Assembly: GCA_048772705.1 (NCBI GenBank)
Contig: JBLWGC010000230.1
Coordinates: 992,001-1,056,000, forward strand
Reading direction: 5' to 3'
Origin: Leidyana gryllorum EB-2025a
Taxonomy: Eukaryota; Protista; Apicomplexa
DNA: 64,000 nucleotides
Shown: positions 21,901 to 46,266 of the stretch, piece by piece
Layout: each line of letters opens with the position of its first letter
How positions within the stretch are numbered: position 1 is the first letter of the stretch
Translations under genes and position numbers: made by a program
The notes under the pieces: generated by a model
The model's input: only the letters and a program-made list of their open reading frames with translations
Told to the model about the DNA's origin: nothing
Databases searched by the model: none

Positions 21901-22466
21901 ACGGATATGTCGTGATGACTGGATCTGACCCCCATATCTATGAGGAGCCGGCTCTGGGAAGGTCACACTCACAACGCCCGCCCCCAATGATCGATGGATA
22001 TGTGGTGCCCAGAAGTCCGCCCCGTATCGATGAGGAGCCGGCTCTGAGAAGATCCCATTCGCAACGGCCAGCCCCCATACCCCATGGGTATGTCGTGAAG
22101 CCTGGAAGCCCCCCCCGCATCCCTGAAGAGCCAGCCGTGAGAAGGTCGCAGTCACAACGCCCAGCGCATCAAAATTTGGAAAATCCTCAGACTCCGCCGC
22201 GAACGGTCGACGGAAGACCCGGTGGGGACCATCTCTCTATCACAGGCGACCGTGCTCACATAGACGGGCGCTGGGCAAATCCGATACCAAATCCGTTTGC
22301 ACAGCAGTGGTCGCTGGTAGAATTGCGATCCCAGCGAGCAGGAAGGCCCGTGAGCGCCGGGTATCAAGCGAAAACCGCAAGTGAATTGTCAAGAAACGAT
22401 GTGGTGGCAAAATGGCTGTCGATGGGTGACGCACTCGGCGAAGAAAACAATTCTGGATGGCAGTAA
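18952..22466 (+). CDS. Large repeat-rich hypothetical protein (about 1100 aa); intron 19682-19722
   Basis: A 41-nt GTAAGA...CTCAG intron joins the 18952 ORF in frame to the 19794 ORF frame. It carries two internal repeat arrays. Confidence 0.7.
20292..20690 (+). repeat. Coding tandem repeats of 48/57 bp (RRSPSITPATSGGQAV and RRSPASTPATSGGQTSPP-type units)
   Basis: About 8 RRSP-containing units are directly visible, several identical at DNA level. Confidence 0.9.
21800..22165 (+). repeat. Coding repeats of about 30 aa (EEPALxRSHSQRPxP...GYVV)
   Basis: Four degenerate copies are visible in the translation and in the DNA (gaggagccggctctg...caacgccc). Confidence 0.85.
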
Positions 22467-22761
22467 TCTTCAACAATGTGAACGCCGAATTTGCCATCAT
22501 GCAATGACTAATAACTTTGACGATATGTATCTCTATCTTCGTGCTGCTTATTGTAAAACTGAGGGGAACGCACTTATACTTATGTGACAGTGTTCGATCG
22601 TTCGAACACACACACGACAGATCATTTCAATTGAATTATTGGGGCATTCGCACGATGTGCGCTACACAAGCTAGTAGGAACACACTCCTCCGAGCACACG
22701 TGGTACGGTCTTTGGGCACTCTATAGTCTACAGCACCGTGTGTGATTGGATAAGTATCGAG

Positions 22762-23374
22762 ATGCGTGTTTTCATAGCATGTCTCCTCCCATGGACAATT
22801 CTCGGTTTGGATTTTGGTGTCAAGACAAATTTGCGTGGTGGTGTTCCAACGGGAGATGAGACTTTTCTGCGCATTGCAGACGCTGAAAGCGTCAAACCCG
22901 ACCTCTCACAGGTACTCGAGTTGAAACTTGTTTCTTTCTCAAATGACACTCTAGGGGGTCGAGCTCAGCATGAGCGCTGAGGGCAGTTCCGTTCAACGCC
23001 GTCTGTTACGAGCAGTACAGGGTGGCAGGGTGGCGATATCCTTCCCCGACGCTCCCGAAGTGCAAGTACGGGCGCACGAGAACTTATGGATGGCAGGGAC
23101 GGATGTCGAGTACATTGAAGATGAAGGTTCTCATTATTGGGAGGACTCATCCGAGCGAGTCTTCCGATTGGTTCGCGATATCTGGTCTTGGAGACCAACA
23201 GAAGTTGAGCGGTCGACTTCTTTTACGACGTTCACCTTCCCCACACATCCCGATTACACCCCCATGGACAAAATATGGTGGTGTGTCAAAATGTCCCTGC
23301 CTGTGTCATTCTTGTTATTTTCGGTTTTGCATCCTGTGATGAAATCCGTATATGAACTAACTCACACTTACTAA
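22762..23374 (+). CDS. Small secreted/membrane hypothetical protein, copy 1; intron about 22912-22954
   Basis: Signal-like MRVFIACLLPWTILG. A GT-AG intron joins in frame to MSAEGSSV...ELTHTY. Hydrophobic stretch near the C-terminus. Confidence 0.6.
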
Positions 23375-24396
23375 GAATTGTACACCGTTATACCAGCCAG
23401 CTAGTCAGCCATCGCACAGACACTCTGTAGGAGTTAGTGAATTGTTGTAGGAGCGGTATGTGCGCCTAGAGTGACTTCAATCGCACCGCGAATAAGCTTC
23501 TGGAAGATACTTTTTATGCAAAACCACCATATTATACAATGTCTGAAGTGGGATTGGTTGATGGCGACGCTTTCCGAGAGGGGGGTTTATCTGGGAAGGT
23601 CACACTCACAACGCCCGCCCCCAATGATCGATGGATATGTGGTGCCCAGAAGTCCGCCCCGTATCGATGAGGAGCCGGCTCTGAGAAGATCCCATTCGCA
23701 ACGGCCAGCCCCCATACCCCATGGGTATGTCGTGAAGCCTGGAAGCCCCCCCGCATCCCTGAAGAGCCAGCCGTGAGAAGATCCCAGTCACAACGCCCAG
23801 CGCATCAAAATTTGGAAAATCCTCAGACTCCGCCGCGAACGGTCGACGGAAGACCCGGTGGGGACCATCTCTCTATCACAGGCGACCGTGCTCACATAGA
23901 AGGGCGCTGGGCAAATCCGATACCAAATCCGTTTGCACAGCAGTGGTCGCTGGTAGAATTGCGATCCCAGCGAGTAGGAAGGCCCGTGAGCGCCGGGTAT
24001 CAAGCGAAAACCGCAAGTGAATTGTCAAGAAACGATGTGGTGGCAAAATGGCTGTCGATGGGTGACGCACTCGGCGAAGAAAACAATTCTGGATGGCAGT
24101 AACCTTCAACAATGTGAACGCCGAATTTGCCATCATGCAATGACTAATAACTTTGACGATATGTATCTCTATCTTCGTGCTGCTCATTGTAAACTGAGGG
24201 GAACGCACTTATACTTATGTGACAGTGTTCGATCGTTCGAACACACACACGACAGATCATTTAAATCGAATTATTGGGGCATTCGCACGATGTGCGCTAC
24301 ACAAGCTAGTAGGAACACACTCCTCCGAGCACACGTGGTACGGTCTTTGGGCACTCTATAGTCTACAGCACCGTGTGTGATTGGATAAGTATCGAG

Positions 24397-25009
24397 ATGC
24401 GTGTTTTCATAGCATGTCTCCTCCCATGGACAATTCTCGGTTTGGATTTTGGTGTCAAGACAAATTTGCGTGGTGGTGTTCCAACGGGAGATGAGACTTT
24501 TCTGCGCATTGCAGACGCTGAAAGCGTCAAACCCGACCTCTCACAGGTACTCGAGTTGAAACGTGTTTCTTTCTCAAATGACACTCTAGGGGGTCGAGCT
24601 CAGCATGAGCGCTGAGGGCAGTTCCGTTCAACGCCGTCTGTTACGAGCAGTACAGGGTGGCAGGGTGGCGATATCCTTCCCCGACGCTCCCGAAGTGCAA
24701 GTACGGGCGCACGAGAACTTATGGATGGCAGGGACGGATGTCGAGTACATTGAAGATGAAGGTTCTCATTATTGGGAGGACTCATCCGAGCGAGTCTTCC
24801 GATTGGTTCGCGATATCTGGTCTTGGAGACCAACAGAAGTTGAGCGGTCGACTTCTTTTACGACGTTCACCTTCCCCACACATCCCGATTACACCCCCAT
24901 GGACAAAATATGGTGGTGTGTCAAAATGTCCCTGCCTGTGTCATTCTTGTTATTTTCGGTTTTGCATCCTGTGATGAAATCCGTATATGAACTAACTCAC
25001 ACTTACTAA
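24397..25009 (+). CDS. Small secreted/membrane hypothetical protein, copy 2 (exons appear identical to copy 1)
   Basis: Duplicate of 22762-23374. Confidence 0.6.
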
Positions 25010-25173
25010 GAATTGTACACCGTTATACCAGCCAGCTAGTCAGCCATCGCACAGACACTCTGTAGGAGTTAGTGAATTGTTGTAGGAGCGGTATGTGCGC
25101 CTAGAGTGACTTCAATCGCACCGCGAATAAGCTTCTGGAAGATACTTTTTAGGCAAAACCACCATATTATACA

Positions 25174-27220: not shown

Positions 27221-27856
27221 TCAACGGCGGCCCGGTCTGCCAGGTTGAGGATGGCCATAACCAGGCTGCTGAGGGTGGCCAAAGCCGGGCTGCTGAGGGT
27301 GGCCAAAGCCGGGCTGCTGAGGGTGGCCAAAGCCGGGCTGCTGAGGGTGGCCAAAGCCGGGCTGCTGAGGGTGGCCAAAGCCAGGTTGTTGGGGATGGCC
27401 GAAACCAGGTTGTTGGGGGTGGCCGAAGCCGGGGCCGGGTTGCTGGTGACCGAAGCCAGGAGCGGGAGGGGCGACGGCAGCGGGGCCGCTGCTGCCGCTG
27501 TTGTTGCGCATGATAGTAAGTTGGAGGGAAGGACGAGTGTCGCAGTTCTTCTCCGGGTTTAATTGAATAGCACCGCAGAATCTAGGTTGACGTCCAATGT
27601 AATCGTTGAGGTTGACGAAAGCTTTGGCGAAGCAATTGTCTTTGCTCATCATATCGATGGCCAAGGACACGTTGCCATCCCAGGAGAAGGAAGCTTGCTC
27701 TTCCCAGCTGCAAGTGGAACCTGGCTTCTCCACGCGCTTGCTCTCCCAGACGCTGGTGCCAACATAGAGCTTTACCGAGGGGCTGCAGCTCTTCAACAGG
27801 CCCAATTTTTCGGGAAGGTTGCTGGCGGAGTGGACGATGATGGTAAGAACTGACAT
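27221..27856 (-). CDS. C2-domain protein with C-terminal GFGHPQQP repeats
   Basis: LTIIVHSASNL...SPSVKLYVG...WEEQASF...AKAFVNL is a C2 pattern, followed by a Pro/Gln/Gly repeat tail. Confidence 0.8.
   Translation of the reverse strand: MSVLTIIVHSASNLPEKLGLLKSCSPSVKLYVGTSVWESKRVEKPGSTCSWEEQASFSWDGNVSLAIDMMSKDNCFAKAFVNLNDYIGRQPRFCGAIQLNPEKNCDTRPSLQLTIMRNNSGSSGPAAVAPPAPGFGHQQPGPGFGHPQQPGFGHPQQPGFGHPQQPGFGHPQQPGFGHPQQPGFGHPQQPGFGHPQQPGYGHPQPGRPGRR
27240..27460 (-). repeat. 24-bp coding tandem repeat (PGFGHPQQ), about 8-9 copies
   Basis: ggctgctgagggtggccaaagccg is repeated on the + strand. Confidence 0.95.
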
Positions 27857-28091: not shown

Positions 28092-29894
28092 ATGTCCTCC
28101 TTATTATTGAGTTACCTTATTTTCCTCTCTGGTCTGGTCTCTGGACGGACTGACGAGTGTACCTATGCGATCGAGTTAGTTCAAGTTCAAGATGGCTCGA
28201 CGTCCTTTGACGGACACATACAACTGATGGCTAGTTTCATGACAGAGCTGTCCATGCAGCTGACAGAAAGGTACGGCGAAGTGAAGATAGGTTTATCGAG
28301 TTTCGTGGACAAACCAATCCCCTACACTGGCATTGGTCCGTACGGAGCGTATCCAGAATATACATGGGACTATTGCTATCGTCGGCATACGCCACTCACC
28401 ACCGACGTACAATCAGTGATTGAAGGGCTGAGCCACTTACAACACAATTTGGGAAGTGGGAACGATTATCCTGAGAACCCTTTCGAGGGCTTAATGTATG
28501 CAGCCGCCGATCCCGAGATGGGTTGGTCCGCTCCCGATGTGACGCACTCCCCCCAGGGACGTCCCTTAGTCCGTATCGCTATGCTCATCACCGACGATAT
28601 TCCACACGGCCCCCCAGACGCCTATGCCTCCACACAACTGGGCTGGAATTGGAAACGTACGTACCCGTGGGGACCGGATGCTGACAGCTCCGGCGGTTTC
28701 GGAGCCCACGACTTTATTTATACTAATCAAATCTGGACAGCCGACGGTCATGACTACCTCTATTGGGACATGGCTGATCTATTTGGCCGCTTCGACAATT
28801 ACCCTGACACATTCACAGAGGACGAGGAGAGACGACTTGATGAGTTGATAGGTATCTTCGGGCCTTATCCGTGGCCCGAGATCCCCCCGACCCATCCTGG
28901 TGATCTGTCTATGCCATGTGAACAGGTTGACTATCCCACTGATTTTCAAGCGGGAACTTTTATTCAAACATATAATATATTGCCTGTCTTCCTTGTCGCC
29001 GATCCTGAGGCTGTGGCCACCCCCATGGCTCGCGCTTGCGCAGAATTAGGAATGCCTGGCGGCAAGGAATGTCTGGTTGAGTATTACACGCGCAACGTTA
29101 CTGCTATGGGCCTCCCAGCAGTCGTCGATGCGATCAACGGGACCAACACGATGCAAAAGATCCTTGACACTGTTGAAACGCTAGTTGAACTTTTATGTCT
29201 CGATATCCCCACAACATCCACCGACCCCGCGACGACTTCAACGGAGCCCGCGATCCTCACCTCGGACCCCGCGACGACTTCAACGGAGCCCGCGATCCTT
29301 ACCTCGGACCCCGCGACGACTTCTTTGGATTTTCCCACAGAGCCCGCGACGACTCTTTCTGAGCCCGCGGCTACTTTCACTGCGACGAGCAGTGAAGCCG
29401 AGTGTACTGTCTTCGGTACAACGTCTGAGGGAGGTCCCTATGACTCCCCAAGTGAAAATCTTAGCACCAACTACGAGGTTACGACAGAAGAGTCCTTCTC
29501 CACAGAGGAGCTCGAAATAACATTGTCTCTGACTGAAATCGCGTCGAGCGTTCCCGTGATAGTGCCCCCGGGCCCTGGCCCTGACCCCCAACCCACACCA
29601 GAACCCACTACCAGTACGGAAGCCAGCAGTGTTACGGCCAGCACTCAGAGGCCCGTTCAACCAGTCCGAACGACCACCGCTGGCAGCGATGGTCCGAGCG
29701 TTGGGGTGATAGCTGGAGCTGCCGGTGGGGCCGCAGCGGGGGCTTTACTGCTGGCAGCTGGCATATGGAAGTACGGTGGAAGCCTGTTTGGGAGCAATCC
29801 TGAGATGGCTGTTGGACCCGAAGAGGTAGAGTCGCCGGATGCGCCAGTAGAGAGAGAGATTATGGAGGACGTGACGCAGGAAATGTTCCAATAG
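28092..29894 (+). CDS. Type-I membrane protein with an integrin-beta-like vWA domain, Thr-rich stalk, TM helix and acidic tail (TRAP-like architecture); intronless
   Basis: Signal peptide, MIDAS DGSTS, IGLSSFVDKP, YRRHTPLT, SGNDYPENPFEGL, MGW, MLITDDIPH, DYPT and NILPVFLV. TM VIAGAAGGAAAGALLLAAGIW. Tail ends EDVTQEMFQ. Confidence 0.85.
   Translation: MSSLLLSYLIFLSGLVSGRTDECTYAIELVQVQDGSTSFDGHIQLMASFMTELSMQLTERYGEVKIGLSSFVDKPIPYTGIGPYGAYPEYTWDYCYRRHTPLTTDVQSVIEGLSHLQHNLGSGNDYPENPFEGLMYAAADPEMGWSAPDVTHSPQGRPLVRIAMLITDDIPHGPPDAYASTQLGWNWKRTYPWGPDADSSGGFGAHDFIYTNQIWTADGHDYLYWDMADLFGRFDNYPDTFTEDEERRLDELIGIFGPYPWPEIPPTHPGDLSMPCEQVDYPTDFQAGTFIQTYNILPVFLVADPEAVATPMARACAELGMPGGKECLVEYYTRNVTAMGLPAVVDAINGTNTMQKILDTVETLVELLCLDIPTTSTDPATTSTEPAILTSDPATTSTEPAILTSDPATTSLDFPTEPATTLSEPAATFTATSSEAECTVFGTTSEGGPYDSPSENLSTNYEVTTEESFSTEELEITLSLTEIASSVPVIVPPGPGPDPQPTPEPTTSTEASSVTASTQRPVQPVRTTTAGSDGPSVGVIAGAAGGAAAGALLLAAGIWKYGGSLFGSNPEMAVGPEEVESPDAPVEREIMEDVTQEMFQ
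29223..29375 (+). repeat. 42-bp coding repeat (DPATTSTEPAILTS) in the mucin-like stalk
   Basis: Two near-perfect copies plus degenerate copies of gaccccgcgacgacttc. Confidence 0.85.
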
Positions 29895-38100: not shown

Positions 38101-41100
38101 AGCACGCGTTCGGGTGAACGCTTCAATCACTGCGGGGAGACGCGTTTTCCGGATGGGCTTTGAATCGATTCGAATTGAGTTCCCATTTCCATTCCATTGC
38201 ACTCCACACTGTCCATGAACGGTGACCCAATGGATGTCGTACGAAATCGCTTTGATACACTCGTGTGCTGATTGCAGTGGATCACGCTATGAATGCGTCT
38301 ACGACATTTGGGCATCTGCGAGATACGTTCGGTTTCAACGTTGCCGAGTTGGAGGCGACCGTTGGGGTGCTGGCGGCCATATTGCATATGTCTAACCTCA
38401 GCTTCACGGTGTTTCCACCGATCGAGACGTATATCGTGGCGTCGTCTGCTCAAGCTGCGGAAGAGAGTAATCAGGCTAATGAGATGACAGGTCTGAAGGC
38501 GGCCCTGTCTCTTCGTCACAATCGTTCAGGCCGTCAAATAGCGAGATTGACCAATGAGGATTTGTTACGTTTGGCTGCAGACGAGGGACACGCTTTGTTC
38601 TTGCGAGCAAGTGGAGATCCAACACCAGGCCCCAATGAGTTGGCTGACATACGACATCGGTTGACCAAAACTACAGCGTGTCCAATTCGACCGACAGCTG
38701 TCAGTCACGCGATTTATGCTGCGAATTTACTCCAAGTCCCGGTGGCTATGTTTGTGGCTTTGTTTTCGCGAGCTCTGGCGCAACAGCACAATAGTGGTGA
38801 CAATCAAGTGGATTCTTTGTTCGAAGTCTCCAACCACGCGCACCTTTATGAGGAAGAATCCATGTTGTCGAAAGGGATACAGAGCGTTGAAGTAATGCAG
38901 ATTGCCAAAGGAGGTGAAAACGAGGACCCCAGACCAGATCAGGCGATGGTCCTTCCAGCCTGGACCTCCATCCATTCATGGATGCCATTAGATCAGTGCC
39001 GAAGTGTGAGGAAAGAAGTGGCTGCTGCATTGTATCGGCGTCTCTTCGATTGGATTGTGCACCGAATGAATCTCTGTTTGGTCACAGAGCCCGCACTGAC
39101 AATGATGAACGGAGACATCAACCCTCTCAAACAGATTGAGCTCGACTTTAACAACGCGCTCTTCCTGATCGATGGTCCCCCCTTCCTGGAACCACCCAAA
39201 GTGTGCGACAATATGGAGTTCCTTCTCACCACTCTCGTTGAGGAGAAGTTACACCAACTGTATTTGGTTCAAACTTTCCGGGAGTACGCTTTGAACATCC
39301 AGTTGGAAACCGGAACCACTCTTCCACAAGAGTGCACCCTGGATCCACTTGATCACCCAACGGCTTTGGAGCTGCTCACGTCACCTGACATGAGCGCCCT
39401 TTGCCGTCAGCTTGCTGCAAGAGCTCTCGAGAACGAAGAATCGACTAAAACGTGGCTGGTAGAAAGATCGCCCACCTCTCCGTCAGAATTACCCTCAGCC
39501 GGAGGCTCAAGCGGAGAAGATGAGAACATTGGTGATCTGATACTGAGAAATGTCAGATCCCAAAGTATTCTCGCTTCAAAGTGAGTTTAACAAACAGGGC
39601 TCTCTTACCAATCACACCTCACTCAGTCGTTTCGGAGGGTCCGGCTTTGCAGTGAAACACTTCTTTGGGACCACCGAATATCTCGCGTCCGATTGGGTTG
39701 ATCGGTTCAACCGGCATATCACACGAATGTTGGATAATTGGGCTGCCCACACCCGCTCACCAGTGTTGCGGGAACTGCTTCAGAGTCCTGTCGCTAGTGA
39801 GTTCGAATCTTTGACCCTCAGCACATCTCACCACTTAGACCGAGTGGAACCGATGACCAGTCAGGTCGAAGAGTCTATCACTAAACGTAAGGCTCCACAT
39901 CTTGCGACGATCTGCGACAATCTCACCTCTTTGGGTCCCAACAGTGCCTCTGGCCAGAGCTTTCACGGACTCCACTCGTTTGCTACAATCATTAGATAGC
40001 ACTGAAGCGCGCTTCATTCTGTAAGTGGCGAGGAGGCGGCTGAGATTCACACCACCGGTCAGAAATATATCCGTGCCCTTCAATGACAAAGTACCCGACT
40101 CCATTAAGGTATTCCAGCAAACAGAGCGGTTTGAATTAGCCAAGGTCGCGAGACTCATGACCAGTGTCCCTCTGTGCACCATACCCTTGACTACCTTCCT
40201 TCGTCGCTACGCCCTCCTCGAAAGGTATATCAGTAAACGACAGAGCCCAATTGTCCCTCCTCCCTTCCGACCCGTAAGTGTGTGTCGCTGCCCCCCGCAG
40301 ATCAAAGCTCGCGCACAGTTCGGAGACACAGCTGTTGATGAAGAGGAGGCCAACTTGTGCAATGCCACTGCCGCTGTAAAAATCGAAACAGCTCTTCGCT
40401 GGGTACGTGTGCGTGGGTCAGAGTCTGTCGCTCATATAGAGCTCTGCAGATGAACCTCTTCCGCACCTCTGGAGTTGTGACCTATCATGACGCCGACATC
40501 AAAGTTGGTCAAGGAGAGCTGAAGCTGCCGGGAAGGGTGATGGCGGCGATCGAAGTTCTCTGGTGAGATGGGGAGGAGACCGTGCTGCAATCTGTGTGCA
40601 GGACTAAAGTGGTGTCTCAGCGCATCACGAGACTTCAAGCTGGAATTCGGGGCCATAAAATCAAAGTGCGATATCGGATCGGCCGCGAGGCCCGCTTGAT
40701 GTACCTGAAATTGGAAGCGGCCTACCAGAAGGCGGCTGCTGACGGATGGAATTATCTCAAGCCTCCGGCTCTGGAGGATGTGGTCACTGGAGAGGAACTG
40801 CAGGAGAGGTAAGGGGAGTATTTCTCAATAGTTCCGCATCTCTCGCCAGAGTCCAAGCGTTCATCGACGCGGCAGAGTCCTGCGAATGGTTTTTGGAGCA
40901 CTTCTTCTCCAACAAACGCTTACATGAACTACATGCAACAATTGACGTTCTCAAGGAACACGCCTCTTTACTATGGTATGCAATCGCGACGGTCTCTCCA
41001 CTAAATTCACCTCAGCGAGTGCGAGAGAATGCTTCGACGCGGAGAGACTCAGGGCCAAGCGATTGACTCCCTCCTCGCTGCTATCGCCCGCGAGGGACTG

Positions 41101-43409: not shown

Positions 43410-44898
43410 ATGAAGTTGCTAGGCAATGTGGGGGCAACATTGCTGGCCCAATCGTCACTCCGATCGGCCTACGGCGATGAAAATCTGCTAGCCGCTGGTG
43501 AGTTGCCGATGCCGGAGCTATGCTATCCACCGAATGGGGACCCCATGAATGTGGAATTGGAGTTTTTGATCGATGTGAGGGGAGCGATGAAGCCGCATAT
43601 GCCGCTGTGGCGAGCAGCCTTGCCAGAATTGTATCGAAAGCTACGTGGTACTATTGGAAACACATTCATGAGACGCATTATTGGGATCACTGACCGGCCT
43701 CAAGACGGACCAGACGATCTTGGAAAGTCGCTTATAGTCTTTGAGAGGCATAACATATCCAGGCACAGTGACTTGCTGGCTGCCTTGAAGGATCTTGACG
43801 ATTTGGTACAAGAAGAGCCCGACGCAGATTTCGAGCGGGATCCTTCTGACACCACGGGTTGGCCAGGAGCCTCGAAATACGATTCAAAGACTGGAACTGC
43901 CATACTCGACTTCATCTATGATCGATATGCGAACCAAATTTATGATGGAGACATTCCGGGCCCTCAGTTCATGATAGTCACTACTCCAGCGGTGCCACGA
44001 GTCAAAGGACATACAGGGAAATGGTTTGACGACGCTCCTGTTCTCTGGGACCAAATCACATACACGAATTCCTCTTATCTGGAGGTTGCTGAGGCCAAGA
44101 CCCGCCTCAAAACCCTGAATCAGAACCTTTATCACATCACCATGGTAGCTCCCACCGAGGAGGGAACTATTGCTGGCCGAGTTGTTGACACTTTTATGGA
44201 CGATCTTGCGCTCACCCCTCGCTGTTTCACTAACAATCTTAACGTGGGAGGCCTGGCAACTCTGGACACTTACCTGGAGTCAACGACTCGTTGGGCTATC
44301 TGTGCTTGGGTGGGTGCGCAGTACGGTACGGTAGCGACCACACCAGCTCCTTCGTCTACAACTGAGATCACGACGGAGGCCACAACAACGACGGGAATCA
44401 TTCCTCCCATAACAACGTGGCCTCTTACGAGTTTCAGCACAGAGTCGGTAAGTAAAGGTGACGTGTAGAGTGGGATGTGCTGGGTGGAGGACGTTTGCGT
44501 TTGTGTGGCTGTGTGTAAGGATTGATTGTACACTCATTGTTGGGTGGATCTGAGGGTGACAATATTTTCAGACGGACGAGGGTTCTGGCGGGGAGAGTTC
44601 CACCGAGGACGGAGACGGCGACGGGGAAGGAGGTGGTCCCCCCGGGGTCATCCACAGCCGCCAAGCTCGGCCAATTTTATGGATTTTGATTATAGTCTTC
44701 GGGGTGGTGGCGATTATAGCTCTGATATACCTCCTTTACAAATGGTGGAATCGTCCTGCACCTCTGGTGATCGATATGGACGAACCTGTGCAGGAAGATG
44801 AGATCCGAGGAGCGCGCAGGGCGACTATTGTCAACGTTGATGAGGCCGAGGAGGAGCAAAGTGCGGAGATCACGCCGCCAGAGGGTTCTCCCAGATGA
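43410..44898 (+). CDS. Type-I membrane protein with a degenerate integrin-beta-like vWA domain (paralog 2); intron 44448-44571
   Basis: Signal-like N-terminus, LEFLIDVRGAM, GITDRP, FMIVTTPAVPR, SSYLE and a Thr-rich stalk. A phase-0 GTAAGT...TTCAG intron joins to TM ILWILIIVFGVVAIIALIYLLY and an acidic tail. Confidence 0.75.
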
Positions 44899-44940
44899 GT
44901 GCATGTGATTCCAGACAATTGTGCCAAGAGGGACGATGCC

Positions 44941-46266
44941 ATGAGGTATATATCAGCACTTTTGCTGGTTTTAGCCAGACAGACGCAGGCGAGCGTAGAA
45001 TTGTGCCAGACACCCGAGAACTACGGATTGGAAGTGGTTTTGAGCATCGATGTGCAGGGAACGTTTCGAGCTCACTGGCAGCACTTCCAAGTCGGGTACA
45101 CCTCAGCACTATATGACATACACAGAGCATTGCCGGAGGCTAACATTACAGGGATTCAAGCTTTTACTGACAGGCCGGACTATTTGCCCGCGATTGATGA
45201 TCCAACTACCATCTTCAAGTTTCGCCAGGCCCCCACCAGTAACCTTGACGACACTGCTGAGGGTATCCAACTCGCTTCAGAGGTCTTGAAGGAGAAGAGT
45301 TGGGGAGACATGTCTGGAGGCATGTCTCTGGCTCCAGAGTTTCTTCCCGTAGCCAACAAGTATGAGTACGCAGGTTCTGAAGGCAGCGCTGGCTTGGATG
45401 TGATCTATCACATGGCTCGGGATTATCCCTGGTCGCCGGTGGCCGGTCCCAAGATCCACATTCTGGTCACCACAGCAATACCCCGGGAGTTTGGACACAG
45501 TGATACCCTCTGGGACACTCAGAATCCACTTTGGAACAACATAATGAGTGTGAGATCTTCCTATGTGGACATTGGAGGTGCGAGTATCCGGCTGGCCGCG
45601 TCTAAGGACCACAATGTGTACACCTATGTTCTCTCGGGCATGACAGAAGGAGGGGCAAATGCTGTCCCTTTATGGACAGATTACTTGAGTCAACTGGGAT
45701 TGACTCCGTACTCGGAGGTCTTTTATCTGTATCCTCATCAGTCGAGTCTTATAACAGCTGCGATACTGAGGGCAGTGAGCCACAGTAGCTGCCATTGGGT
45801 GGCGCATCAACGGGACCCGCCCGAGACCACCGAGCATCTGTCCGACGACGACTCGACCGAAATCAGCACCGTTGAGCCCCCCACAACAGCTCCCATTGAG
45901 GGCACCACATTTTCGACTTTGGATGCTTTGGAGTCGATCTCTTCGAGCCCCTCCAGTCTCACTAAGCCCACAATGCATTTTTCGAGCACACCAACTTCCA
46001 GTTCCACTGCCACTCTCACGTCGCCGGCCGTGGATGTGGACGATGCGGGGCCCTCTCCTCCCGGGAGACAGTCAAAGCCCAATATGCCATTGGTGATTAT
46101 TGGTGCTACGATCGGTGGGGTTGCAGTGCTGTTGTCGGCAGGAATACTTTTGTTTGGGGCGGCTACCTCGACGGTGGTGGTGTCAGATGATGTAGGCGAC
46201 AGGGATAGAGACGAAAGTTTGGTGAGACTGCATCGCGAAGGTGACGATCAGAGGGCGAGACTCTGA
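44941..46266 (+). CDS. Type-I membrane protein with a degenerate integrin-beta-like vWA domain (paralog 3); intronless
   Basis: Signal MRYISALLLVLA, LEVVLSIDVQGTF, AFTDRP, HILVTTAIPR, SSYVD, Ser/Thr stalk, TM VIIGATIGGVAVLLSAGILLF and an acidic tail. Confidence 0.75.
   Translation: MRYISALLLVLARQTQASVELCQTPENYGLEVVLSIDVQGTFRAHWQHFQVGYTSALYDIHRALPEANITGIQAFTDRPDYLPAIDDPTTIFKFRQAPTSNLDDTAEGIQLASEVLKEKSWGDMSGGMSLAPEFLPVANKYEYAGSEGSAGLDVIYHMARDYPWSPVAGPKIHILVTTAIPREFGHSDTLWDTQNPLWNNIMSVRSSYVDIGGASIRLAASKDHNVYTYVLSGMTEGGANAVPLWTDYLSQLGLTPYSEVFYLYPHQSSLITAAILRAVSHSSCHWVAHQRDPPETTEHLSDDDSTEISTVEPPTTAPIEGTTFSTLDALESISSSPSSLTKPTMHFSSTPTSSSTATLTSPAVDVDDAGPSPPGRQSKPNMPLVIIGATIGGVAVLLSAGILLFGAATSTVVVSDDVGDRDRDESLVRLHREGDDQRARL

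Follow-up and report, generated by a model that had tools for sequence, protein, structure and literature searches.

Gregarine trophozoites are the fastest gliders among the Apicomplexa. A genome-level survey of gregarines, which inventoried TSP1 proteins alone and never mentioned integrin, found no canonical adhesins (PMC9250747). A candidate for this part is encoded by a gene of Leidyana gryllorum EB-2025a, located in a stretch of 64,000 nucleotides (referred to here as the window; contig JBLWGC010000230.1 of assembly GCA_048772705.1, forward-strand positions 992,001 to 1,056,000). An earlier note, made from the sequence alone, had described its 600-residue product as an integrin-beta-type von Willebrand factor A (vWA) adhesin built on a scaffold like that of TRAP and MIC2. 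The N-terminal domain of this protein is a stand-alone domain of the integrin beta-I type and, judged by its sequence features, the protein is very likely a single-chain surface adhesin that depends on its MIDAS (metal ion-dependent adhesion site).

The type of the domain is indicated by profile, sequence and structure searches. In a Pfam search of the 600-residue protein, Integrin_beta (PF00362) matched above its cut-off (E-value 9e-7, 29.3 bits, cut-off 24.8), and neither VWA (PF00092) nor TSP1 gave a match. All 50 matches of a sequence search against the PDB were integrin beta chains, and the family profile matched PDB integrin beta chains with an E-value of 1e-31. An AlphaFold model of the domain has a predicted local distance difference test (pLDDT) score of 96.5, and its top 50 structural matches in Foldseek were likewise all integrin beta chains. 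Alignment by VIA-align placed beta-I domains first, with Z-scores of 22.4-24.6 and root-mean-square deviations (rmsd) of 2.1-2.6 over about 230 residues (the beta-6 I domain: Z 24.6, rmsd 2.4 over 229 residues), followed by Pactolus at 21.9 and then by structures at 16 or below, among them TRAP at 13.5 and 13.2. An ESM Atlas search by features returned generic vWA clusters. Apicomplexan I domains have been found far more alpha-I-like than beta-I-like, and all of those studied so far are alpha-I-like (PMC7351488); since the present domain scores high as a beta-I domain, it is of a type other than that of TRAP and MIC2. The proposal of a beta-I-type vWA domain without TSP1 is therefore borne out by the Pfam profile, by structure and by conservation within the family.

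Every motif named in the earlier note is present and in the order stated: DGSTS (starting at residue 34), SSFVDKP (69), SGNDYPENPFEGL (122), MGW (143), LITDDIPH (165), DYP (280), NILPVF (295), IAGAAGG (540) and EMFQ (597). Hydropathy gives a signal peptide, one C-terminal membrane helix and a short tail, the signal peptide being called from hydrophobicity and its occurrence in relatives, without a dedicated predictor. The stalk is 37% Thr plus Ser and 14% Pro, with one Cys only. Relatives with the same layout range from 489 to 663 residues.

Alignments to beta-6 and beta-7 identify all five MIDAS residues (D34, S36, S38, E128 and D168); 18 of 19 close relatives, and 26 of 34 domains from the same genome, have the full set. 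The synergistic metal-binding site (SyMBS) retains D73, D125, P127 and E128. Its Asn position is held by Gly123, and the Asn in the "GND" of the earlier note is thus a different residue. Gly occupies this position in 19/19 close relatives, 30/34 own-genome domains and 21/23 bacterial domains; Asn occurs in three of four eukaryotic integrin-like rows. The Asp pair of the site adjacent to the MIDAS (ADMIDAS) is replaced by Gly41 and His42. The ADMIDAS is variable in amoebozoan integrins as well (10.1101/2020.04.29.069435, from which the definitions of the metal-site motifs were taken).

Between TDxxxH and DYP the protein has 107 residues, as compared to 32 in integrin beta-7 and 25-32 in bacterial domains. 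We take the loop holding this insertion to correspond to the loop that binds the alpha-subunit propeller in integrins. The roughly 75 extra residues, overlooked in the earlier note, are modelled confidently (pLDDT 96-98) and include a helical hairpin; folded by itself, without an alignment, the insertion reached a pLDDT of 43. The genome (15.5 Mb on 237 contigs scanned) gave no match to the integrin-alpha FG-GAP repeat (PF01839), in a search that a divergent or intron-split gene could escape. From the expanded alpha-binding loop and the absence of an FG-GAP match we infer a domain that would be monomeric, with a rebuilt alpha-binding face.

The protein is one member of a large family, a circumstance that had also been missed. 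The genome carries about 50 beta-I domains on some 20 contigs, often in tandem. It gave no match to the alpha-I-type vWA profile PF00092, although divergent or intron-split genes could escape this search as well; TSP1 repeats were found at two loci only, and rhomboid matches at three. A profile of the membrane helix plus tail matched 19 places in the genome, of which 10 share a reading frame with a beta-I domain and 3 lie shortly downstream of one; the remaining 6 are unassigned and include one mucin of 5,477 codons, and none of the 19 is at a TSP1 locus. Among named species, the nearest relatives come from Protomagalhaensia, Blabericola and Gregarina (38-44% identity) and remoter ones from Polyplicarium, Lankesteria and Porospora, so that six eugregarine genera are represented altogether, and the source of the window would itself be a eugregarine. 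Roughly half of the paralogs examined are without a membrane helix, and would be secreted; the rest have the Gly/Ala helix. For the species of these relatives the sequenced material was trophozoites, a hint of expression in the gliding stage; three of the four contigs are 8-14 kb long, and the material may include DNA.

Several loci depart from this layout. On contig C51 (221,800-227,200), two tandem genes that come after the closest paralog have lost the N-terminal half of the beta-I motif set and retain the insertion, the helix and the Phe-ending tail. The mucin frame, rich in Thr and Ser and with the same helix and acidic Phe-ending tail, lies on the minus strand of contig C194 from about 55,450 to beyond 72,500, and its repeats extend upstream past the portion of the frame examined. 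The secreted paralogs combine a beta-I domain with Thr-rich and Cys/Pro-rich regions, form tandem arrays with as many as five members, and have in common a short C-terminal strand motif, possibly an assembly or coat signal. Within the window, two tandem and strongly diverged beta-I-like paralogs without DxSxS are located at 43410-44468 and 44899-46266 (+), the latter with a Thr/Ser stalk and a membrane helix; the pair matches the profile weakly (E 1e-5; hhalign probability 85).

Of the 38 residues of the cytoplasmic tail (563-600), 10 are acidic (Asp and Glu, 26%) and 1 is basic. An acidic tail with a subterminal Trp is what defines the TRAP family (PMC2169348; PMC9019593), the Trp being decisive according to PMC9019593; the tails of this family contain 18-30% Asp/Glu and have little sequence in common (PMC2169348). 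The penultimate residue of the window protein is Phe599, and its tail contains neither a Trp nor an NPxY/F motif. An aromatic residue at -2 is found in 44 of 50 membrane-bound members (Phe in 38, Tyr in 5, Trp in 1), as compared to 7 of 114 other homologs, and 34 of the 44 have Arg at -13; the 50 were chosen by presence of the helix and are related rows, so that independence of the counts cannot be assumed. Apart from generic helices, neither a Pfam family nor a solved structure was matched by the tail profile. One member from Lankesteria metandrocarpae (P0082), a short beta-I adhesin that keeps the DRE motif of the family, ends in Asp-Ala-Trp-Asn, and Trp-Asn is the ending of the Plasmodium TRAP type. 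In addition, the stop-codon primer of MIC2 translates to the end D-M-W-M-E (PMC2169348), which the D-M-F-x end of the family resembles. The Trp-Asn member and this resemblance suggest that Phe stands at the same functional position as the Trp of TRAP. The TRAP-like anchor with Phe in place of the subterminal Trp, as claimed earlier, thus gains backing from conservation in the family. As for the wider notion of a TRAP/MIC2-like scaffold, the resemblance stands as an analogy and need not mean common descent of the anchor.

A second likeness to TRAP and MIC2 concerns two cysteines. In the model, Cys23 directly precedes strand beta1 and Cys369 falls in the final turn of the C-terminal helix, a placement that corresponds to the TRAP/MIC2 clamp. 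Cys23 is invariant in the 19 close relatives and occurs in 29/34 own-genome, 18/20 named gregarine and 1/23 bacterial domains; over both cysteine columns the counts are 29-31/34, 18-19/20 and 2/23, respectively. A disulfide between the N-terminal segment and alpha7 has been called unique to apicomplexan I domains, where it is part of force-driven opening (PMC7351488).

These features can be combined into a mechanism. Once secreted, the protein would stand out from the cell surface on an O-glycosylated stalk. With no alpha subunit involved, the Mg2+ of the MIDAS would bind an acidic side chain on a ligand from host or substrate, and the inserted subdomain would cover the alpha-binding face or take its place. 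A Cys23-Cys369 bond would tie the N-terminal segment to alpha7, and tension on the stalk would then favor an open, high-affinity state. The acidic tail, through Arg at -13 and the aromatic residue at -2, would bind a conserved cytoplasmic partner of the actomyosin motor, such that the adhesin is moved rearward, and a rhomboid protease would finally shed it within the Gly/Ala helix. This full model of a motor-linked analogue of TRAP, drawn from sequence, is the strongest of the single models and is given slightly less than an even chance. The earlier suggestion of a gliding or attachment adhesin stays plausible, with new support from the clamp cysteines and from tail conservation, the Trp-Asn member included.

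Several points weigh against the motor-linked model. The subterminal Trp, which defines TRAP and whose loss impairs gliding (PMC2169348; PMC9019593), is absent. Neither the Protomagalhaensia sp. Gyna nor the Gregarina sp. Pseudo transcriptome yielded GAC (PMC9250747), and both species have close relatives of the window protein with the DMF tail (P0006 and P0012). Conservation of the tail is inflated because the rows are kin, and the Cys23-Cys369 bond is proposed from position. The number of paralogs without a membrane helix, about half, means that the beta-I domain also has secreted roles. Finally, IAGAAGG, listed in the earlier note beside the rhomboid-cleaved IAGG helix of TRAP and MIC2, was rejected as proof of rhomboid cleavage; the motif is not diagnostic, as the helix profile also matches the helices of integrin alpha-X and the sodium-channel beta-2 subunit, with which the IxGxxxG start is shared.

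Part of this evidence could be accommodated by a static adhesin, acting in epimerite or mucron attachment to the gut epithelium, in gamont pairing during syzygy or in gamete recognition, whose tail would be a sorting or recycling signal for trafficking adaptors instead of a link to the motor. Acidic clusters that include an aromatic residue are frequent among sorting signals. The ordered Arg(-13), Val(-7) and Phe(-2) have the look of a defined motif, unlike the dissimilar tails of TRAP proteins, GAC is missing in two transcriptomes with the tail, and the paralogs are many, tandem and divergent. This alternative is nevertheless unlikely, though it deserves to be taken seriously: one member has the TRAP-type Trp-Asn end, the clamp cysteines are those of the force-bearing TRAP and MIC2, and genome searches gave no other TRAP-type candidate with this tail. 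The many secreted paralogs of beta-I and Thr-rich composition with their conserved strand motif, the identical helix and tail type on the 5,477-codon mucin frame, and the existence of MIDAS-dead paralogs would fit a family that supplied a shed coat or mucus trail, the membrane form being a precursor that is cleaved, the beta-I domains cross-linking mucin or serving as decoys, and the tail bearing no force. Such a role does not account for the fact that the final 14 residues of the tail are strongly conserved from genus to genus, nor for the intact MIDAS in 18/19 close relatives, and is considered improbable.

Two further explanations were rejected. The beta-I fold and the MIDAS would fit a genuine integrin heterodimer that signals via talin, with this protein as its beta subunit next to an alpha subunit, but the protein shows no Pfam PSI, hybrid, I-EGF or beta-tail domain and no NPxY, the alpha-binding loop is expanded and FG-GAP had no match; a genome search for the talin I/LWEQ domain was also blank, though uninformative. 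It is thus very improbable that this is an integrin subunit. Contamination of the assembly by host or bacterial DNA might be considered, as animals and bacteria are known to have beta-I domains and the present domain scores well against bacterial ones. The contig is longer than 1.5 Mb, with eukaryotic housekeeping neighbors and a uniform G+C content of about 53%, the paralogs number about 50 on some 20 contigs, and the nearest named relatives are all eugregarines, which leaves contamination with hardly any credibility.

Beta-I-like domains are known in bacteria (PMC3192720), and with the profile of the close gregarine clade, stand-alone domains from bacteria reach 48-106 bits versus 30-52 for human beta chains; the bacterial set was picked by similarity, and about half of it is labelled bacterial from domain content only. 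In a tree built by a quick method from 82 rows, with insertion columns, near-duplicates and most unnamed rows left out, gregarine and springtail rows split from bacterial and integrin-like rows with a support of only 88, consistent with one origin of the gregarine domains followed by their expansion. The tree cannot name the donor, because animals were not sampled: the search for animal integrin beta gave two unnamed eukaryotic sequences only. The springtail rows come from Orchesella dallaii (GCA_964186735.1), which encodes secreted proteins with 4-13 tandem beta-I-like domains on scaffolds of 5.9 and 15.9 Mb. These genes have apparent introns and insect-type neighbors, fall among the gregarine rows with weak support, and share the Cys95 column; gene transfer between gregarines and a host lineage is possible.

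A family of this kind was unexpected, because the apicomplexan I domains studied are alpha-I-like and alveolates go unmentioned in surveys of integrin beta beyond animals (10.1101/2020.04.29.069435). The literature searched, to which two possible sources on gregarine surface proteins (Templeton and Pain 2016 and the Ascogregarina survey) did not belong, contained no description of the family, which is apparently undescribed; database entries for its members may already be labelled "integrin beta". Taken as a whole, the proposal that eugregarines swapped the alpha-I/TSP1 adhesins of the TRAP type for a monomeric beta-I family, with a domain that probably came from bacteria, an acidic Phe tail wired to the motor and a force-sensing disulfide clamp of the TRAP/MIC2 type, is tentative and rather doubtful. 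If true, it would supply the missing gliding adhesin of gregarines, as well as a natural beta-I domain that binds its ligand without an alpha subunit. The family provides concrete adhesin candidates with testable residues (D34/E128, Cys23/Cys369, Arg588 and Phe599), and a soluble, self-standing beta-I domain with an intact MIDAS would aid the structural biology of integrins. Gregarines are also relevant to insect rearing.

Parts of the probable adhesin gene, with positions in the window
Feature	Position	Strand	Basis or remark
Whole gene	28092..29894	+	Single open frame of 600 codons; type I membrane protein of 600 residues
Signal peptide (predicted), residues 1-18	28092..28145	+	Hydrophobicity; hydrophobic N-termini also in relatives
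Stand-alone integrin beta-I-like vWA domain, residues 19-372	28146..29207	+	Pfam PF00362; AlphaFold; structural alignment
Cys23, directly ahead of strand beta1; likely pairs with Cys369	28158..28160	+	Conservation; bond inferred
MIDAS DxSxS (D34, S36, S38), then G41/H42 at the ADMIDAS Asp pair	28191..28217	+	Beta-6/beta-7 alignment
SSFVDKP, including SyMBS Asp73	28296..28316	+	Asp in 19/19 close relatives
G123-x-D125-x-P127-E128: SyMBS loop (Gly for Asn) and MIDAS Glu128	28458..28475	+	Alignment; site counts
TDDIPH, including MIDAS Asp168	28590..28607	+	Alignment; site counts
107-residue segment from TDxxxH to DYP; clade-specific insertion with helical hairpin	28608..28928	+	Lengths; model
Cys369, last turn of the C-terminal (alpha7) helix	29196..29198	+	Model helix 335-352 = residues 353-370; conservation
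Mucin-like stalk rich in Thr, Ser and Pro (residues 373-533), containing short repeats of 42 nt	29208..29690	+	Composition
Gly/Ala-rich membrane helix, about residues 537-559	29700..29768	+	Hydropathy; family alignment
Acidic cytoplasmic tail, ending [ED]RE..EEV.xDMF-x; Arg588 at -13, Phe599 at -2	29769..29891	+	Family alignment

Head to head with this gene in the window, with about 235 nt between the start codons, stands a gene for a C2-domain protein with a tail of 8-residue Gly/His/Pro/Gln repeats (27221-27856, minus strand). Further upstream, a near-identical tandem duplication (21953-23400 and 23590-25030, spacing about 1,636 nt) doubles an open reading frame of 134 residues without a Pfam match, and downstream, a weak match to the myosin head (E 0.001, below the cut-off) lies at 38265-39584 (+).

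In comparison with known systems, the closest likeness in layout is to TRAP, CTRP and TLP of Plasmodium and MIC2 of Toxoplasma. Like these, the window protein is a single chain with a signal peptide, a MIDAS-bearing domain of vWA fold, a low-complexity stalk, a Gly/Ala helix, a short acidic tail with a subterminal aromatic residue, and a cysteine pair at the N-terminal segment and the end of alpha7. They have an alpha-I-like vWA domain, TSP1 and Trp, whereas the window protein has a beta-I domain, no TSP1, Phe and about 50 paralogs; the TRAP family at large takes one or more vWA and/or TSP1 domains as its adhesive part, and of these the vWA fold is present here. With the integrin beta chains of animals, other Obazoa and Amoebozoa it shares the beta-I fold with both characteristic insertions, the D-S-S-E-D residues of the MIDAS and most of the SyMBS; it differs in having no PSI, hybrid, I-EGF or beta-tail domain, no NPxY, no ADMIDAS Asp pair and no SyMBS Asn, in an alpha-binding loop that is about 75 residues longer, and in the lack of an alpha subunit among the genes found in the genome. 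Bacterial integrin-beta-like domains (Trichodesmium type; in RTX or PEP-CTERM proteins) are also free-standing beta-I domains, mostly with Gly at the SyMBS position (21/23), and give the best non-gregarine scores for the gregarine profile. In contrast, they keep the ADMIDAS pair (23/23) and are without clamp cysteines, insertion and the eukaryotic helix and tail. Dictyostelium SibA and the type II integrin-beta-like proteins of Amoebozoa are likewise single-chain protist receptors with an integrin-beta-like vWA domain, but those have Ig-like stalks and NPxY/talin tails, and the window protein matches neither vWA_SIBA-E nor NPxY. Pactolus (Z 21.9) offers a precedent for a beta-I-derived domain that works without an alpha subunit; it is a derivative of rodent beta-2 that has lost MIDAS function, whereas the window domain keeps its MIDAS. 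By definition the window protein is not a TRAP protein, nor is it an integrin; it belongs with the single-chain I-domain adhesins.
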